Source: Oopsacas minuta
Lineage: Eukaryota; Animalia; Porifera
DNA length: 64,000 nucleotides
NCBI GenBank assembly: GCA_024704765.1
Contig: JAKMXF010000011.1
Location: forward strand, 947,973-1,011,972
Direction: 5' to 3'
How positions within the stretch are numbered: position 1 is the stretch's first letter; each line of letters begins with the position of its first letter. The notes beneath the pieces are model-generated. The model worked only from the letters and a program-made list of their open reading frames with translations. It made no database searches and was not told the origin of the DNA. Positions 18,155-28,536 of this stretch are shown here, piece after piece. Position numbers and translations under genes: made by a program.

Positions 18155-21100
18155 ATGGCAGCAAGAGAATATACAACTAACTCTACCAACACTACAACAA
18201 GCAAATCTGAAGATTCACGGGGTGAAGTTGAGATTAGAATTCTAATCTGGTATAAGGTTAACCAATGGCTTGTTGTTCTATTCTATTTGCTCGGTTTTCT
18301 AAGTCTAGGAATCCTCCTGCTGTTCTCGTACTGGTTTCCTAGAATTAAAAGTTATTTTATCGGACATCGTTGTTTTGTGAAGGACGCTACCCATGTTCTT
18401 ATCCGTGACGTAGACAATGATTGGAATATAGTTAAAATTTGCTCTGTCGATCTTGAGAACAGTGATTCACTGGTTATAAATAATTCCCAGGAAGAACATG
18501 AACACGCTAGACTCGTAGTAGAACAAACCTATCAATTCCGATATTTCATATTCCGTCAGTCTAGGTATATAGTGGATGAATTAGAAGGAGAGGCTCGTAA
18601 ACAAACAGCTTACGACGTAGGCTATACATGTGAACAAATATATGAATTAGCTGGGCAAGACACTAGCCAGTATTCAAAAGATAGAGCTAAAGTATACGGC
18701 CCTAATCTGATTGATGTGCCTGTTAAATCGTATCTCCAGTTATTTGTAGAAGAGATACTCAATCCTTTCTACATATTCCAAGTATTCAGCATTATCATAT
18801 GGGTCTTAGTTAATTACTACTATTACGCGGGAGCTGTGTTCTTAATCTCAAGCATTTCTATAGTACTCAGTCTATATCAGACGCGTAAGAATATGATACA
18901 GCTTAAGAACATGATTGCATTCTCCTGTAAAGTAACTGTACACCGTGGTAAATCTGTATACCATAATACACCCAGTAATGCCTTGTATCCTGGTGACGTC
19001 ATCGAGATACCTCGTACTGGTCTTAGGGTTCCGTGTGATTGCGTGTTAATATCCGGTAATGCTATAGTGAATGAGAGTATGTTAACGGGAGAGAGTGTCC
19101 CTGTGTTTAAGACCCCTCTCTTACATGAAGCAGAGCTATACTCTGTAACAGCTAACAAACGTCAAAATCTATTCAATGGTACTGATGTAATACAAACTAG
19201 AAATCTACCAAACTCTAAAGTACTAGCTTTTGTAATAAGAACAGGCTATAGTACTTCTAAGGGAGAACTAGTTCGATCTATTTTATACCCGAAGCCAACT
19301 AGACTACGATTCTACAAACAATCTTTAAAATTCCTAATATTCCTGATCCTATTGGGGGTAATAGGAATGTTGTATACACTAGTATACCAGGCTATTAGAG
19401 GGCAGGAACCCTTTGAAATATTCCTATTAATGTCAGACCTATTCACCACTGCTGTACCTCCATCTCTACCAGCTGCTATGACTGTTGGGATGATATATGC
19501 TCTGGCTCGGCTTAAGAAACATAGAATATATTGTATTAGTCCTCAGAGGATTAATGTGTGTGGTAAGATTAAGTGTGTGTGTTTCGATAAGACAGGTACT
19601 CTTACAGAGGATGGGTTAGATTTCTGGGGTGTGGTACCGGTAGGTAAGACCTTTGAACAGCCAGTACATAATCCCCGTAAGCTAGGTATTACACCGTTAA
19701 TCACTGCTATGTCAAGTTGTCATTCATTGACACTGATAAATAACCAGTTGGTCGGTGACTCTGTTGATATTAATATGTTTAAAGCTACAGGATGGGAGCT
19801 AGAAGAACCGCAAGATGAGACTAATAGGTTTGATTTATTGGTACCTGTTCTAGTTAGAGCTCCTTATACAGACTGTAGTTATGAAGCTGGTATATTACAT
19901 CAATATCCATTCTCTTCAGAACTACAGAGAATGAGTGTTGTAGTGAAATGCCTGAGAGATGAACAACCTGAAAACCTTATGTTATACTCTAAAGGTTCTC
20001 CTGAAATGATAGCTAGCTTATCTACACCAGATTCTATACCTAAAGATTTTAATGAAGTTCTAGCTCTATACACTAATATGGGGTTACGTGTACTAGCAAT
20101 TGGCTGTAAGGAGCTGACTATTCCCTGGCATAAAGTCAGTAGAATTCCTAGAAATGACATGGAGACAGATCTCAAGTTCTTAGGCTTATTCCTCATGCAA
20201 AATAAGCTTAAACCTATTACTACCAGTGTAATACGTGAGCTGAATACAGCTGATATACGAGTCGTCATGATAACAGGTGATAACATGTTGACAGCTGTCA
20301 ATGTAGCTCTAGAGTGTGAAGTGATACAACCACGGTCAGAAGTGTTCATAATCTCACTGAATGATACCTCCCTTAACCAAGGTATAGACAGTGATATCAT
20401 ATTTACTCCACATAATCCTGAGCTACAGCAAGCTCCTATGCTAGAAGGAAATCCTCTAACACAGCTACCTAGCACTAACTACTGTCTGGCTATTAGCGGT
20501 ACTACATTTGAGCTAATACATAGACATGCCAGTAGATACTTACTAATAGCTATACTGTTGAAGTGTGTAGTGTTTGCTAGAATGTCTCCTAAGCTTAAAT
20601 CCATTATTGTAGAAGAATTACAGAAATTAGGATATGTTGTAGCGATGTGTGGAGATGGTGCGAATGATTGCGGGGCGTTAAAAACTGCAGATGTTGGAGT
20701 AAGTCTGTCAGATTCTGAGGCTTCGGTAGCTTCACACTTCACTTCTAAGATACAAGATGTTAGCTGTATCCCTGTTGTTATTAAGGAAGGTAGAACTGCA
20801 CTAGTAACAGCATTCAGTATATTCAAATTTATGGCTTTATACTGTGTCATAGAGTTTACATCTGTAGTTATAATGTACTGGTGGTTATCAAATTTAGGAG
20901 ACTGGCAATACCTCTACATCGATCTTATTCAGGTATTCGCACTAGCTCTCGTTATGGGTTACACTAAACCTTATTCACGTCTAGCTTACAGACGACCATC
21001 TGCTAATCTTGTTAACTCAATTAACCTAATATCCTGTGGTGTACATATTCTTCTGGCTATTGGATTCCAGATATCTAGCTATATTCTTTTGAGAACTACT

Positions 21101-22761: not shown

Positions 22762-23982
22762 ATGAGTGCTGTAAATATCCCTATTAAACTCGACGGTAAA
22801 ACTAAGTCCCCTGGAGGTTCAAAGGTCATTCCAAAGGACAATACTCCGTCTCCTGGCTCTGAAAAGAAGTTTTCCACCACGACCTCTCAGGCTAAATCTA
22901 ATATTCCCAAATCTTCTGTAACCAAATATCAATCCTATTCAAACAGATCTCAATCTTCACATGGCAGCTTCAATAAGGATAAAGTGAATGGAGGGAAATC
23001 TGAGGATTCCCATAATATAACTAGAACACGTGATTGTAATAGTAAGACAGCTCTTGGTCATAACTCAGGATTGACAGAACGTAAAGTTTATAGTCACTCT
23101 AAAGTACCTGATAGGATAAAACATAAGAGCGTAACAAACAATAATTCCATGGAACAAGATTCCCTGACTTATTCCAGTCCTGAACCATCTCCTCCAGCTT
23201 CTCCCCCGCTTAATGAGACCAGTGATGATTCTGTTGTCGTATCGGATAACCCTGAGGAACACATGAAGGCCCCGTTTATCATAAAGAAGGCTGAACCAGA
23301 CGATAACACTCATGTACATAACCAATACGATTCAGCTTCAGATGCTCGTACACTCACACCTATTTGTTGTCACGCTACTCTCCTCGCTTCTAAGAAACGC
23401 CCCGCTAACAAGAGGCCTGGACATCTAAGGCACATGAAAACCCTCAGTGTAAATCGCATCCAAACACTCAAAGATTATTTGAGCATTTATGAAGAACGTC
23501 TAGGACGTATTAAGGCGGATCAACCTTTACTTTTGGGAGAAGCAAGGCAGGGATTAGAAGAAGTAATTACAAGAGCTACTCAGCAATGGAATGGATTGCA
23601 AACTGAAATTGATCAGCAATACGAAGAGCTAATTAAAGATACAGAATCTCATAAAGCTAGGATTATTAAGGAGCTTAAGGATTTGGAATCTTTACAGAGT
23701 GAATCTTCTACACTATACGATATTTGTGACCTGGAAGAAGATGATAATAACCTAGGAAAATGGGTATACTCTATCAAGGAGAGATATAACCAAACTCTAT
23801 CTCTCTGCGATAATACAGATGCTACAGACTTCCTACCTTCAATCTCTATTGAGAGAATTGATGAAATTAGAGCAAATTACGAATCTCAAATACTTAAGCT
23901 TACAAACACAAATCTATTGTTGGGTACTCCTGCTGTAGCTAACTCAGTATCGAAAGATATTCCACGTACGTCAACTTTATGA
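22762..23982 (+). CDS. Hypothetical protein: Ser/Lys-rich disordered N-terminus and coiled-coil C-terminus
   Basis: 406-aa ATG ORF; heptad-rich region from about IQTLKDYLSIYEERL onward. Confidence 0.7.
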   Translation: MSAVNIPIKLDGKTKSPGGSKVIPKDNTPSPGSEKKFSTTTSQAKSNIPKSSVTKYQSYSNRSQSSHGSFNKDKVNGGKSEDSHNITRTRDCNSKTALGHNSGLTERKVYSHSKVPDRIKHKSVTNNNSMEQDSLTYSSPEPSPPASPPLNETSDDSVVVSDNPEEHMKAPFIIKKAEPDDNTHVHNQYDSASDARTLTPICCHATLLASKKRPANKRPGHLRHMKTLSVNRIQTLKDYLSIYEERLGRIKADQPLLLGEARQGLEEVITRATQQWNGLQTEIDQQYEELIKDTESHKARIIKELKDLESLQSESSTLYDICDLEEDDNNLGKWVYSIKERYNQTLSLCDNTDATDFLPSISIERIDEIRANYESQILKLTNTNLLLGTPAVANSVSKDIPRTSTL

Positions 23983-25214
23983 CGTGATACATCTAATTAT
24001 AATTCTGCATATACTTTTGTGGTTATTAGTTATATGTATATTTGTTGTTATATTACCCTCTGCTAACTTTAAATTTATATAATATTGTATAATTTCTTGT
24101 ACACTGCGTCAATAGAATCTTATACTGCACTATATATGGACATTCATTGCCATATTTATCTGAAAATTATCCTATAATTATCTGCCAATTTTCCTTAATA
24201 CTCGCCGTTACTAGAACAATACTAATCGCTTCTTAGAGATTGATTTGTAATTTGTTAACAAGTGATTACTCCATGGCCTCATTACGTGCACAAGTTCATA
24301 CTCTAATCTCTGGAGTGTCTGGTTATGCACATTTTTGTGTATTCAGTCAACACCAAAATTCTCACCACGATAGCTTTTTATCACAGAATACTGTGAAAAT
24401 CTTTTGAATAAATAAGATAATATATTCTCTATATAGCTATATTAGTAATATTAATAATTTTACGTTTATGATTGTATTCAATTAATTTTCTGAGATTACT
24501 GTCGCAATGCTAACACTGCAATATACTGCATATAACGTCAATGAGATCTCTTTTATTGCAATTTTAATAAAGTAATGGGTCAGGACCCTTGTTCTAATAC
24601 TTGGTTATTCAATGGATTTTCCTTTTGATTACACATGATTATGCCTCAGTATGATATCATTTAATTTAGAGTAATCTCTTCGCGATTTTACCCCTGTGTA
24701 TGATAATAACCATTACTGCTGTATATACAGCAATAATTCTACCCTTATTCACTGACTTAACGTACATTATGCTTCATAAAGATAATGATGTTTGTATCAT
24801 GTGATTGTAAATATATTTATGATTGTATTTGCTTTTTTTCTAAATTCAAATTTCGGTTATTTATAGTTTGAGCTAATTATTTGTCCATTTTTGGAAAGTG
24901 TAAATTGCTGTATCTTCGGAAATTCTTGTCATCTAAGCGATGTTGCATGAATTTTCCCTAAACTAGTTGACCTACGTTCATAGCTACCCTATGAGTTTCA
25001 TGTTACTCACGTGTTTAATATTTTACAGATTTGTATGTACTTTCATTAGTTTCATATTTTAATTAGATAAATCCCCAGTTTTTACTGTTAATCATTACTT
25101 ACACTTGTCTCAATTACATTTATTAATAATATTCAATTCCCTTGATATGTTATCCCACAGAGACAGGCATTATGCAATACCATGACAGTACTATCACATA
25201 TGCTGTGAGGTAAT

Positions 25215-25224
25215 GGGACTTTCC
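25215..25224 (+). promoter_or_regulatory. Perfect NF-kappaB consensus site GGGACTTTCC
   Basis: Exact match in the intergenic gap about 270 bp beyond the stop codon of the death-fold adaptor gene. Function unshown. Confidence 0.3.
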
Positions 25225-25495
25225 TATCTGTGTTAATCTAAGGCTACTGTGAATCCTATTTGTATTAATGGTGAGTTAATAAGATAGAATGTGTCTCATT
25301 TTATTTTTGCATAATAATACCGTCTTAAAGCTCTTCTCATTGTGGTGTCCGTCTTAAATCATTAACAAATGAGTTATATGATTCAACTTATTAGACAAAC
25401 ACTTAAAATAGCTTAAATAAATACTTAAAGCCCATTGCCAGCTTGCTGCTACAGTTTTGCGTTTAATTATGTTTAAAATCACTACTAAATCAATT

Positions 25496-26425
25496 CTACT
25501 TTAATGCTACTCTTGAAACAGCTACTGGGAAGTTGCCTTTAACTATTCCTCTTAAGTTCGATTTGCATAGAGCTCTAGCAAATGCCAATAGACTACAGTC
25601 CTCACTCAAACTCTTCCATAGTGTTATCATCCGCACTACTTGGTCTTTCAATCTTCTTGAGTCATATTCGATTTCATCAATCTTTCCTTCTTCCAACTTG
25701 AATCCTTTCCTCGCTACTGTTTTCCATTCACGACCTATTTCACTAGCTATAACGTCAATAAATTCCGGACTAATCGGGGAGTTAACTTCCTCTGGCTCAT
25801 CTACAGGAGATTTAGATTCTGGGGTCGTGTTACCTGTGTTTATTACTTGTATTGGTCCGTTGTATGTGAGATTGTTTATTGTCATTGCACCGCCGTTAAC
25901 CTCTGCTCTGTAATTATTCTCATTAGCGAATACTTGTTTCTGGAAATTAAATTCATAAGGAGTAGAGCTGTGGCTAGGTGGGGGAGGAGGTTGGAAGGTA
26001 AATTCAGGATTCAGTGTACTTTGTCTGTAGTAATTGTTGTATTCCGAGAATTGTGCTCGTGCGAAATGAATGTTCTCATTGTTTGGGCACATTGGGTCAA
26101 CTGGTGAAGGAAAATCCATTTTCTTTGAATGATTATTTTGCTTATAAGCTAGGAGATGTTCTAGATTGTTCTCTTTAAGAAAATCAACTAATATTGGATC
26201 TTGCCAAGGGTCGAGTAGATCTTGTTTCTTGAGAATGTCAAATATATTCAGAATTGTGTATTTATCCATTTCTGAAAGTTGGGATTCACTGAAATAGATT
26301 TCGTAATATAAACTTTTTGCTATTAACCAGTTTTTAAATTGTTTCACTTGCTCGGGACTTAGCTTTCTAGAAATCTTTACTAAATAACATGAGTAGATGA
26401 AGAAAGTGTCTTGTTTGAATTCCAT
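25496..26425 (-). CDS. FADD-like adaptor: N-terminal DED-like domain, Asn-rich linker with RHIM-like motif, C-terminal death domain
   Basis: DD: FIDVIASEIGREWKTVARKGFKLEEGKIDEIEYD...LKDQVVRMITLWK...LARAL-like end. N-terminal helical domain YLVKISRKLSPEQVKQFK...IFDILKKQDLL resembles a DED. Confidence 0.75.
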   Translation of the reverse strand: MEFKQDTFFIYSCYLVKISRKLSPEQVKQFKNWLIAKSLYYEIYFSESQLSEMDKYTILNIFDILKKQDLLDPWQDPILVDFLKENNLEHLLAYKQNNHSKKMDFPSPVDPMCPNNENIHFARAQFSEYNNYYRQSTLNPEFTFQPPPPPSHSSTPYEFNFQKQVFANENNYRAEVNGGAMTINNLTYNGPIQVINTGNTTPESKSPVDEPEEVNSPISPEFIDVIASEIGREWKTVARKGFKLEEGKIDEIEYDSRRLKDQVVRMITLWKSLSEDCSLLAFARALCKSNLRGIVKGNFPVAVSRVALK

Positions 26426-28482
26426 TTGATTTGTTATTTTTCTTGATTCAATACATTGTAATGAAAATCTGAAATATCAAATTCTTGTATTTATACTCCT
26501 CCCCGACCTCCCAAAATCAAAGCGGGTAGTCTCCCTCAGGATTTATAAATAATAATCATAAATATATCCTGCACTTTCAGTATCTGTATTACATTCCTAG
26601 CATTCTCTAATACGTTAGCTATATCTATAGGGAAATATCTAGTCTAACGATCCCTATCGCTCCTATAATACAGCTACAGTTTGTCAATTAGTTCCTAATC
26701 TGTTCTAAATTATTATCTCTATATATTAAGGGAAAGTCATTTCTAATTAATTAAATAACTCAATATTCTCATCAATACGGTTGATAATAAGGGTTTAATG
26801 ATAGACATATGTCTGTGATTGCCTTTCATTTACGTGAAAATTGAATGTTTTACGAAATGATTTGGAGATTTATAAGCCCCGCTTCTAAACAGGATTTATC
26901 ATTTTATAATTATGATATTTAGCATTTCTAGAGATTTTGTATTATTGTAAAGCTATTTTATTTATTATACAGAATTATGTAATATTTGATATTTATACAA
27001 CACCTATATCGTTAATCTGTACTATGCAATATCTTTATATTGCTTACATCTTCATAAATATTATCCAACTGTTTGTATACAAATTCTTGTTTATTCCTGA
27101 TATATTCTTATTGAACAACAAACAAACAAATTAGCTATACTTGAGGACAAATTACCTCATTAATAAATGTATATTTACATGTGTTTATCATTGCAAATGC
27201 AATTATACAGAAATGTTGTATTTCTATAGAAATCTGGACATATTATTATAATGGAAATTATTCTAGCTAACCAAGCGTGTTTTAATATGTCCTCTCATCT
27301 AAATGAGTATTGTGTACTAGCAAATGTGCTGGAGCAAGTATACATAAATTTGATCAGCTGGTATCTATTGATTTGTCTTGTAACAGATTGTAGATATTTA
27401 TATATTATTTGATTTGTTATTCAAATTCTCTTACAAGATAATGTGGATAAAATGTTTGTGTTGGATGACAGCTTGAATGGAATATCAGTGAATAGCACCC
27501 TTACCGCCTGATACGAATACTGATAATATTCAGTTTTGGTTGCAACCTTGAATAAGAATATAGACAATTATGGTTAGTATCCATAGTCTAATTTTGTACT
27601 TTAATGTTTATAGAATAATAATAGCAATGTTCTATGCTATCCTATGTATCTACGTAGAGCATACACAATTTTCACATGTGTGTTAGGTTGAAACATATTA
27701 ATACATATGAAATCAGCTGTTTGTTAATAATGCGTAGGTATTTACTTTATCAACTGATATGACTATATTATTATATGTGCTATATTCGCCTATTTCATGC
27801 TACAAATACAGAGCTATTCGTCCTATGATTAAATTTATATCTCTTATATTAACATGATGTGATATTCAACAGTATTCCATAGTAAACCGCAATTTGGAAT
27901 TGGAAGATTTGTATTGGAGTTAGAACTTCTTTTTTTGTGTTTGCTGGTTTTTGAACAAGTCTAAGTCAATTTGTTCTAACCTTTAGAAAGCAGACAATTA
28001 ATATATTCTATGTCAGTCTGAATGGATACGAAGCTTAGTCGCAATATATTTTATTAACTCTGCTTATTATTTAAAATATTTAATATTATTATAATTATGG
28101 ATTATCAGGCTTGTTAGCTTATAATAGATTACTATTAGACACAACTTTTTCTTTGTAATCTTTGTTAATTGTGCAATTCTGCTAAGCAATCTCTTCTGAT
28201 TAATGATATATCTCTGTTAATATTATATATGATAATGATAATTTTCTATAAATCTTAGGTCAAAAAATTGAATTTACACGCTAATGAATAAATTAGAAAG
28301 TACATCATCACTCTACAGGATCGCTGAATTATCAAATATTATTGGAATAATACTCTTTGTTTTATTGTTTTTCGTATTCATAAACTAAGTCTCAACACGC
28401 GTGTGTGAAAATATGATTAACTGATAAACAGTTTAATTATAAATAATGCAAGGTTTTCGTGAGTGAATAAATCTTTCCCGGC

Positions 28483-28536
28483 TTACTTACTTACTTACTT
28501 ACTTAATTAATTACTTACTTACTTACTTAATTACTT
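28483..28536. repeat. Imperfect (TTAC)n / (TTAA)n microsatellite
   Basis: cttacttacttacttacttacttaattaattacttacttacttacttaattactt. Confidence 0.9.

Follow-up and report, generated by a model that had tools for sequence, protein, structure and literature searches.

The minus-strand open reading frame (ORF) at positions 25496–26425 of the analyzed window probably codes for FADD as it occurs in glass sponges, an adaptor without enzymatic activity that carries a lineage-specific linker module kept by selection. The window is the whole stretch of DNA under study, 64,000 nucleotides from one contig of Oopsacas minuta. According to the ORF list and the sequence, the frame spans 930 bases and encodes 309 amino acids from ATG to TAG, and splicing is unnecessary. 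It represents a complete single-exon coding sequence for a FADD-type adaptor (309 residues plus stop) whose start and end are common to its orthologues. An N-terminal death effector domain (DED), a linker of about 120 residues, and a C-terminal death domain (DD) together give a FADD architecture. Pfam places the DED before the DD with no catalytic domain, the order that characterizes FADD-type proteins, and scans of the whole protein and of the linkers of all seven orthologues returned nothing beyond DED and Death. A feature search in the ESM Atlas placed FADD clusters nearest, with a score of only 0.82 that serves as a lead; the linker alone as a query gave no usable match there.

The DD covers residues 220–309 (25499–25768, minus strand) and is assigned from Pfam and from sequence matches in the PDB. 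Pfam Death (PF00531) spans residues 223–295 with an E-value of 6.4e-9 and 36.3 bits, which passes the cutoff of 22.6. By sequence, its relatives of solved structure are the DDs of mouse FADD (2e-5), RIPK1 (1.5e-4), and THOC1 (3.9e-4). This domain is the best-kept part of the protein, with a column identity of 0.90 and a pN of 0.064. Its AlphaFold2 (AF2) model is poor, at a pLDDT of 42–63. By analogy with the FADD family, the DD would dock to a receptor or adaptor further upstream that also has a death domain.

The DED covers residues 8–98 (26132–26404, minus strand) and is identified from a weak Pfam match, an AF2 model, Foldseek, and VIA-align. Pfam DED (PF01335) matches residues 14–94 with an E-value of 0.025 and 15.3 bits, under the cutoff of 35.9. 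A profile of the seven N-termini matched no DED in the PDB, and the sequence shares only about 20% identity with FADD domains of known structure. AF2, run on the family alignment of seven sequences, gave a model of low overall quality (mean pLDDT 49), in which residues 4–95 form a six-helix bundle at a pLDDT of 70–83. Foldseek ranks the FADD DED at the top (TM-score by target 0.78, rmsd 1.8 Å), followed by the DEDs of caspase-8, cFLIP, and PEA-15. In VIA-align, the FADD DED (8yd7_L) aligns over 82 of 84 residues with an rmsd of 1.7 Å and a Z-score of 11.9, and values below about 13 are attainable between unrelated helical bundles by arrangement alone. The best 20 rows of the VIA-align ranking are all DEDs; PYDs come after them, then DDs, then a CARD. 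Taken together, full coverage, a small rmsd, a ranking led by DEDs alone, and the weak Pfam match make a DED the reasonable call for the modeled N-terminus. Where the DED carries its RxDL motif, the sponge family reads (E/D/S/R)-x-N-L at the position aligned by eye. As in the family at large, such a domain would recruit DED effectors, for example, caspase-8-like or tandem-DED proteins.

The original prediction had described this ORF as an adaptor with a DED, an intervening segment, and a DD, in part of FADD type, and this description stands. The significant Death match and the modeled DED agree with the layout, and the N-terminus models as a death fold of six helices. In both domains the comparison leads to FADD, whose DD is the best solved relative by sequence and whose DED is the nearest structure to the model.

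Word-based searches, queried with either the protein or the alignment of the family, recovered six relatives, all from ENA assemblies, 58–70% identical and 305–309 amino acids long, and nothing outside these seven family members. One of them, P0003, is N-terminally short in the database, where the gene caller began at an internal GTG (L007, 5953–6000). Its open frame runs 16 codons further upstream to an ATG, MEKSFDYHNFSYLCFL. The gene order SF3A1, ubiquitin-like, FADD-like, unknown, MutL_C-like, and P5-ATPase is common to all. Because all share this order, the six relatives are orthologues.

The linker between the two death folds is not uniform: its first half varies, and its last 64 residues (156–219) are kept. 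The variable part, at residues 99–155 (25961–26131, minus strand; 96–155 in the family alignment), is rich in Pro, Asn, and Tyr and is predicted to be disordered (pLDDT about 30). Many indels interrupt its alignment, the column identity falls to 0.39, and its pN of 0.346 is the highest in the protein. The kept part comprises an Asn/Gly-rich island at residues 156–198 (25832–25960, minus strand), recognized from the alignment, the composition, and AF2, and a Ser-Pro/acidic cluster at residues 199–219 (25769–25831, minus strand), recognized from the alignment and lying directly N-terminal to the DD.

The island has a distinctive composition. Asn makes up 21% of its residues, compared with 5.2% in the stop-free stretches of the window, and all Gly residues of the first 219 positions fall within it. 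The highest strand propensity of the linker also lies here, with a peak at residues 183–197. Two invariant Asn-Gly pairs stand 12 residues apart, and each is followed by a short alternating strand (NGGAMTIN and NGPIQVIN). In the family alignment, the invariant residues are N177, G178, G179, A180, T182, I183, T187, N189, G190, and I195. The segment singled out in the original prediction, VNGGAMTINNLTYNGPIQVINTGN, corresponds to residues 176–199. It was described as an Asn-rich, beta-prone stretch between the two death folds at about 25826–25900; its position is 25829–25900, and the composition and strand propensity agree with the description.

The neighboring cluster is composed of 29% Ser plus Thr, 24% Asp plus Glu, and 19% Pro. 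Its invariant residues are P202, E203, S206, P207, V208, P211, E213, S216, P217, and I218, with P220 following. We infer from this pattern that the Ser-Pro sites are candidate phosphorylation sites. Other short motifs were sought by eye in the alignment, and none of the caspase-site, TRAF2, TRAF6, LIR, or NPxY types is kept in all seven sequences. A TRAF6-like P-x-E-x-x-acidic pattern fits P0005 and P0006 only.

Codon alignments suggest that the conserved half of the linker is maintained for the protein it encodes. Column identity and pN are 0.69 and 0.158 in the island and 0.70 and 0.14 in the Ser-Pro cluster, compared with 0.57 and 0.23 in the DED. By these measures, purifying selection on residues 156–219 is stronger than on the DED. 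Synonymous differences are saturated throughout the protein (pS about 0.73) and reach 0.75 in the island. Since synonymous sites are saturated, the constraint on residues 156–219 acts on the protein. For the same reason, the island, which is kept in all six orthologues, represents more than chance composition.

Structure prediction adds limited detail. Modeled alone, a 68-residue linker stretch forms short strands at residues 175–177, 180–183, and 186–188, at a low-confidence pLDDT of about 50. Whether modeled within the entire protein or in isolation, the linker remains at a pLDDT of 30–55.

The segment had also been proposed to be RHIM-like, and this part of the prediction does not survive comparison with the known motif. 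The RHIM core is a tetrad, (V/I)-Q-(V/I/L/C)-G (PMC13506858). In both RHIMs and HET-s, the Gly at its fourth position forms a sharp turn, and mutation of this residue blocks fibrils (PMC4262963). Cryptic RHIMs are very degenerate, with cores such as ARNG, VHIG, and LHFG. In those of Imd, the PGRPs, and shrimp SRB2, the fourth-position Gly alone is absolutely conserved (PMC10268257). A regular-expression search for the tetrad found it in none of the seven sponge orthologues, and the looser x-Q-x-G occurs nowhere in any of them. The seven cores read IQVI, VQVI, VQVI, IHLI, IHLI, IHLI, and IQVAI, so that Gln is replaced by His in three and an insertion falls within the core of P0007. The fourth core position is Ile in all seven, corresponding to the invariant Ile195. 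The alternative register VNGG (176–179) gives V-x-x-G in four of the seven; P0004 has L-x-x-G, P0003 has VKNG, and P0002 is interrupted by insertions. By chance, V-x-x-G is expected 0.23 times per 100 amino acids.

Profile and database searches agree with the motif comparison. Pfam RHIM (PF12721) gave no match at E ≤ 10 to the whole protein or to any of the seven linkers, in a scan whose HMMER filters discard very weak matches. With the linker as sequence and as profile, a PDB search retrieved no RHIM chain of a RIPK, TRIF, ZBP1, or M45. Its only match was non-significant: an acetyltransferase whose left-handed beta-helix coils aligned at E 1.7. In the six frames of the window, no further copy of the motif and no RHIM tetrad occurs in a stop-free context. 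In the literature, we found no paper that connects RHIMs with sponge FADD. Judged on its primary structure, the island is neither a RHIM nor a cryptic RHIM. A conserved I-Q-V tripeptide beside Asn is insufficient for a RHIM call, and the Gly test separates this case cleanly.

The broader proposal of a FADD/RIPK1/Imd hybrid holds in its FADD part, the DED–DD arrangement. With no kinase domain and no Imd-like N-terminus in the protein, its RIPK1 and Imd parts reduce to a generic DD. A RIPK1-type protein was considered and rejected, as Pfam and the regular-expression search show a DD without the kinase domain and the RHIM tetrad. An Imd-type protein was likewise rejected; the N-terminus is a DED by the assignment above, and the sole Asp-containing candidate site (SPVD) has Glu in three of the seven sequences.

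A search for other proteins that share the island returned little beyond the family itself. The 68-residue linker profile was compared with 1.84 billion representative proteins and retrieved the family (5e-33) and three bacterial repeat proteins; at the E-value line of 0.001, the search would miss a partner with no more than about 20 residues in common. The three non-family matches are secreted bacterial repeat proteins, aligned in strand pairs of Fasciclin or other beta-rich repeats, whose E-values arise from summing four or five repeats. The best of them, P0008, is a protein of five Fasciclin domains with a T9SS tail and reaches 9e-6 with its five repeats summed. Its matched piece (residues 259–282 plus the four other repeats) consists of two paired strands with which each FAS1 match ends C-terminally, INGAAVTVEDIQTYNGVVHVID, and the sponge counterpart is VNGGAMTINNLTYNGPIHLIK. 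Homology between the island and bacterial Fasciclin was considered and set aside in favor of convergent strand-turn-strand sequence. What the match shows is a resemblance of the island to strand-turn-strand elements and no relationship between the two.

Against this background, residues 156–219 are best read as a lineage-specific third interaction or regulatory module of the adaptor. The pattern of the island is compatible with a short strand-forming peptide that would bind a partner, or itself, by strand addition. The invariant NG pairs, the peak of strand propensity, the weak AF2 strands, the bacterial strand pairs, and the non-significant beta-helix match all speak for its strand and turn character. 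Phosphorylation of the neighboring Ser-Pro sites would probably tune this binding.

Three other explanations compete with such a module. In one, the island would be a functional amyloid signaling motif, either RHIM-like in mechanism or of a new family, that forms cross-beta polymers or is templated by a receptor with a similar motif, as in RIPK1/RIPK3 or PGRP-LC/Imd. At about 25 residues, conserved, Asn/Gly-rich, strand-prone, and flanked by disorder, the island has the look of amyloid signaling motifs (PMC4262963, PMC13506858), and its two pseudo-repeats open with an invariant NG. The degeneracy of cryptic RHIMs (PMC10268257) and the V-x-x-G of VNGG (176–179) also speak for this explanation. 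Nevertheless, the tetrad is missing and the required Gly is Ile throughout the family, Gln gives way to His in three members, the core of P0007 carries an insertion, and neither Pfam nor the PDB yields a RHIM match. The V-x-x-G pattern is expected by chance at the rate given above and is broken by insertions in P0002. Motifs of this kind act in pairs of receptor and effector, whereas the profile search of 1.84 billion representatives, at its E-value line of 0.001, turned up the island in no further protein. Reports of RIPK1-type RHIM proteins begin with spiralians and lancelets and do not include cnidarians (PMC12119088), the protein already owns two polymerizing death folds, and an aggregation scale is only mildly positive. 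Overall, an amyloid signaling function appears unlikely. We give a similarly low probability to the more specific idea of a new amyloid-type assembly motif, cross-beta or beta-solenoid in form and not described before, that the island would add to the FADD linker in one of the earliest-branching animal lineages. If the amyloid explanation were true, one adaptor would combine three polymerizing modules, namely a DED filament, a DD helix, and a cross-beta core. The origin of amyloid-based immune or death signaling in animals would then lie as early as sponges and would not depend on the RHIM tetrad.

A different explanation, which we consider unlikely, treats the core (IQVI, VQVI, or IHLI) and the Ser-rich acidic tail as a SUMO-interacting or similar short linear motif, possibly phospho-regulated, that acts by strand addition. 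Its partner would be a ubiquitin-like or other globular protein. The general SUMO-interacting pattern is psi-x-psi-psi followed by a Ser/acidic tail. Six of the seven orthologues contain psi-x-psi-psi, and a conserved SSSPESKSPVDEPEE lies 4–8 residues after it. However, this pattern is expected by chance 1.33 times per 100 amino acids, is broken in P0007 (IQVAI), and is followed by Lys instead of an acidic residue. It also leaves the stronger upstream conservation (NGGAMTINNLTYNG) unexplained. It is very improbable that the stretch has no function of its own and is kept as an N-terminal extension packing on the DD or through constraint on DNA or RNA. The stretch does adjoin the DD directly, and the quality of the AF2 models is too low to argue against such packing. 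On the other side, the saturation of synonymous sites in the island (pS as elsewhere) places the constraint on the protein, AF2 yields no contact-confident fold, and Pfam Death begins only at residue 223. A lineage-specific interaction or regulatory module is our preferred reading of residues 156–219.

Comparison with known systems helps to locate the protein. FADD, including that of the sponge Amphimedon queenslandica, shares with it the N-terminal DED, the C-terminal DD, and the lack of an enzymatic domain. The linker marks the difference. In human FADD it is roughly 10–15 residues long, whereas in Oopsacas minuta it extends to about 120 residues and includes a 64-residue module detected only in the seven-member family. 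Amphimedon queenslandica FADD has been characterized as a supersaturable adaptor in DAmFRET (PMC13012725).

The RHIM proteins RIPK1, RIPK3, TRIF, and ZBP1 resemble the sponge family: a disordered region carries a short stretch that contains Asn and tends to form strands, and, as in RIPK1, it lies beside a DD. The I/V-Q-V/I tripeptide is likewise present in four of the seven sponge orthologues. In contrast to RHIM proteins, the sponge family lacks the tetrad, the Gly at position 4, the G-x-x-N that follows, an HMM match, a kinase, and, within the reach of the profile search, a second protein with the motif. RIPK1-type proteins, with kinase, tetrad, and DD, have been described from spiralians and lancelets upward but not from cnidarians (PMC12119088). 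Cryptic RHIM systems, such as Drosophila and shrimp Imd, PGRP-LC/LE, and SRB2, offer a similar likeness, as the adaptor has a DD and, separate from it, a degenerate stretch able to form strands (PMC10268257, PMC13506858). In three orthologues (IHLI), the second core residue is His, which is reminiscent of VHIG and LHFG. The families differ in that the fourth-position Gly is Ile in the sponge and that Imd has no DED. Across the seven aligned sponge sequences, no conserved caspase-cleavage site or IAP-binding motif was found.

The HET-s, PP, and BASS motifs are likewise Asn/Gly-rich pseudo-repeats with disordered flanks, and they lie at protein termini in receptor/effector gene pairs (PMC4262963, PMC7889193). 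The sponge stretch, however, is internal, was detected in one protein family only, and has a repeat of 12 instead of 21 residues.

As a hub, FADD connects death receptors with caspase-8; its existence and polymerization in sponges were already known. The new element is modest but real: a glass-sponge linker module of 64 residues under tighter selection than the DED and with no detectable relative elsewhere. If this module is a binding or self-assembly site, it would suggest that, in an animal of an early branch, the FADD node receives or sends one more signal.

The genomic surroundings of the gene are strikingly intron-poor. Between positions 18155 and 32726 of the window, six adjacent genes each consist of one uninterrupted ORF, and their order is kept in the six other assemblies. 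The ORFs encode a P5-ATPase (1150 amino acids), a MutL_C-like protein (about 245), an unknown protein (406), the FADD-like protein (309), a ubiquitin-like protein (101), and an SF3A1-like protein (730). The MutL_C-like assignment is a weak match. The 406-residue ORF (22762–23982, plus strand) and the FADD-like gene are convergent. At E ≤ 0.01 Pfam matches nothing in this ORF, which nevertheless keeps its position in all relatives; its length ranges from 387 to 440 amino acids across the assemblies. Orthologue P0005 is found on two contigs of ERZ25072730 (L004 and L005; 184 kb and 2.0 Mb), flanked by identical neighbors on each; haplotigs or a segmental duplication of recent date would probably account for the pair.

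Four sequencing runs are available for one sample, and no run is recorded as RNA. Three of them cover positions 23500–28500 evenly, and the fourth, X4, is uneven and carries TruSeq adapter remnants. In run X4, the depth of contig words is 5–14 times higher over 25489–26165 and 23579–23833. The former interval corresponds to the 3' two-thirds of the FADD-like coding sequence, and the latter lies near the 3' end of the convergent 406-residue ORF. Run X4 may represent 3'-biased RNA-seq of the same animal, and its contig depth may thus hint at transcription of the FADD-like gene.
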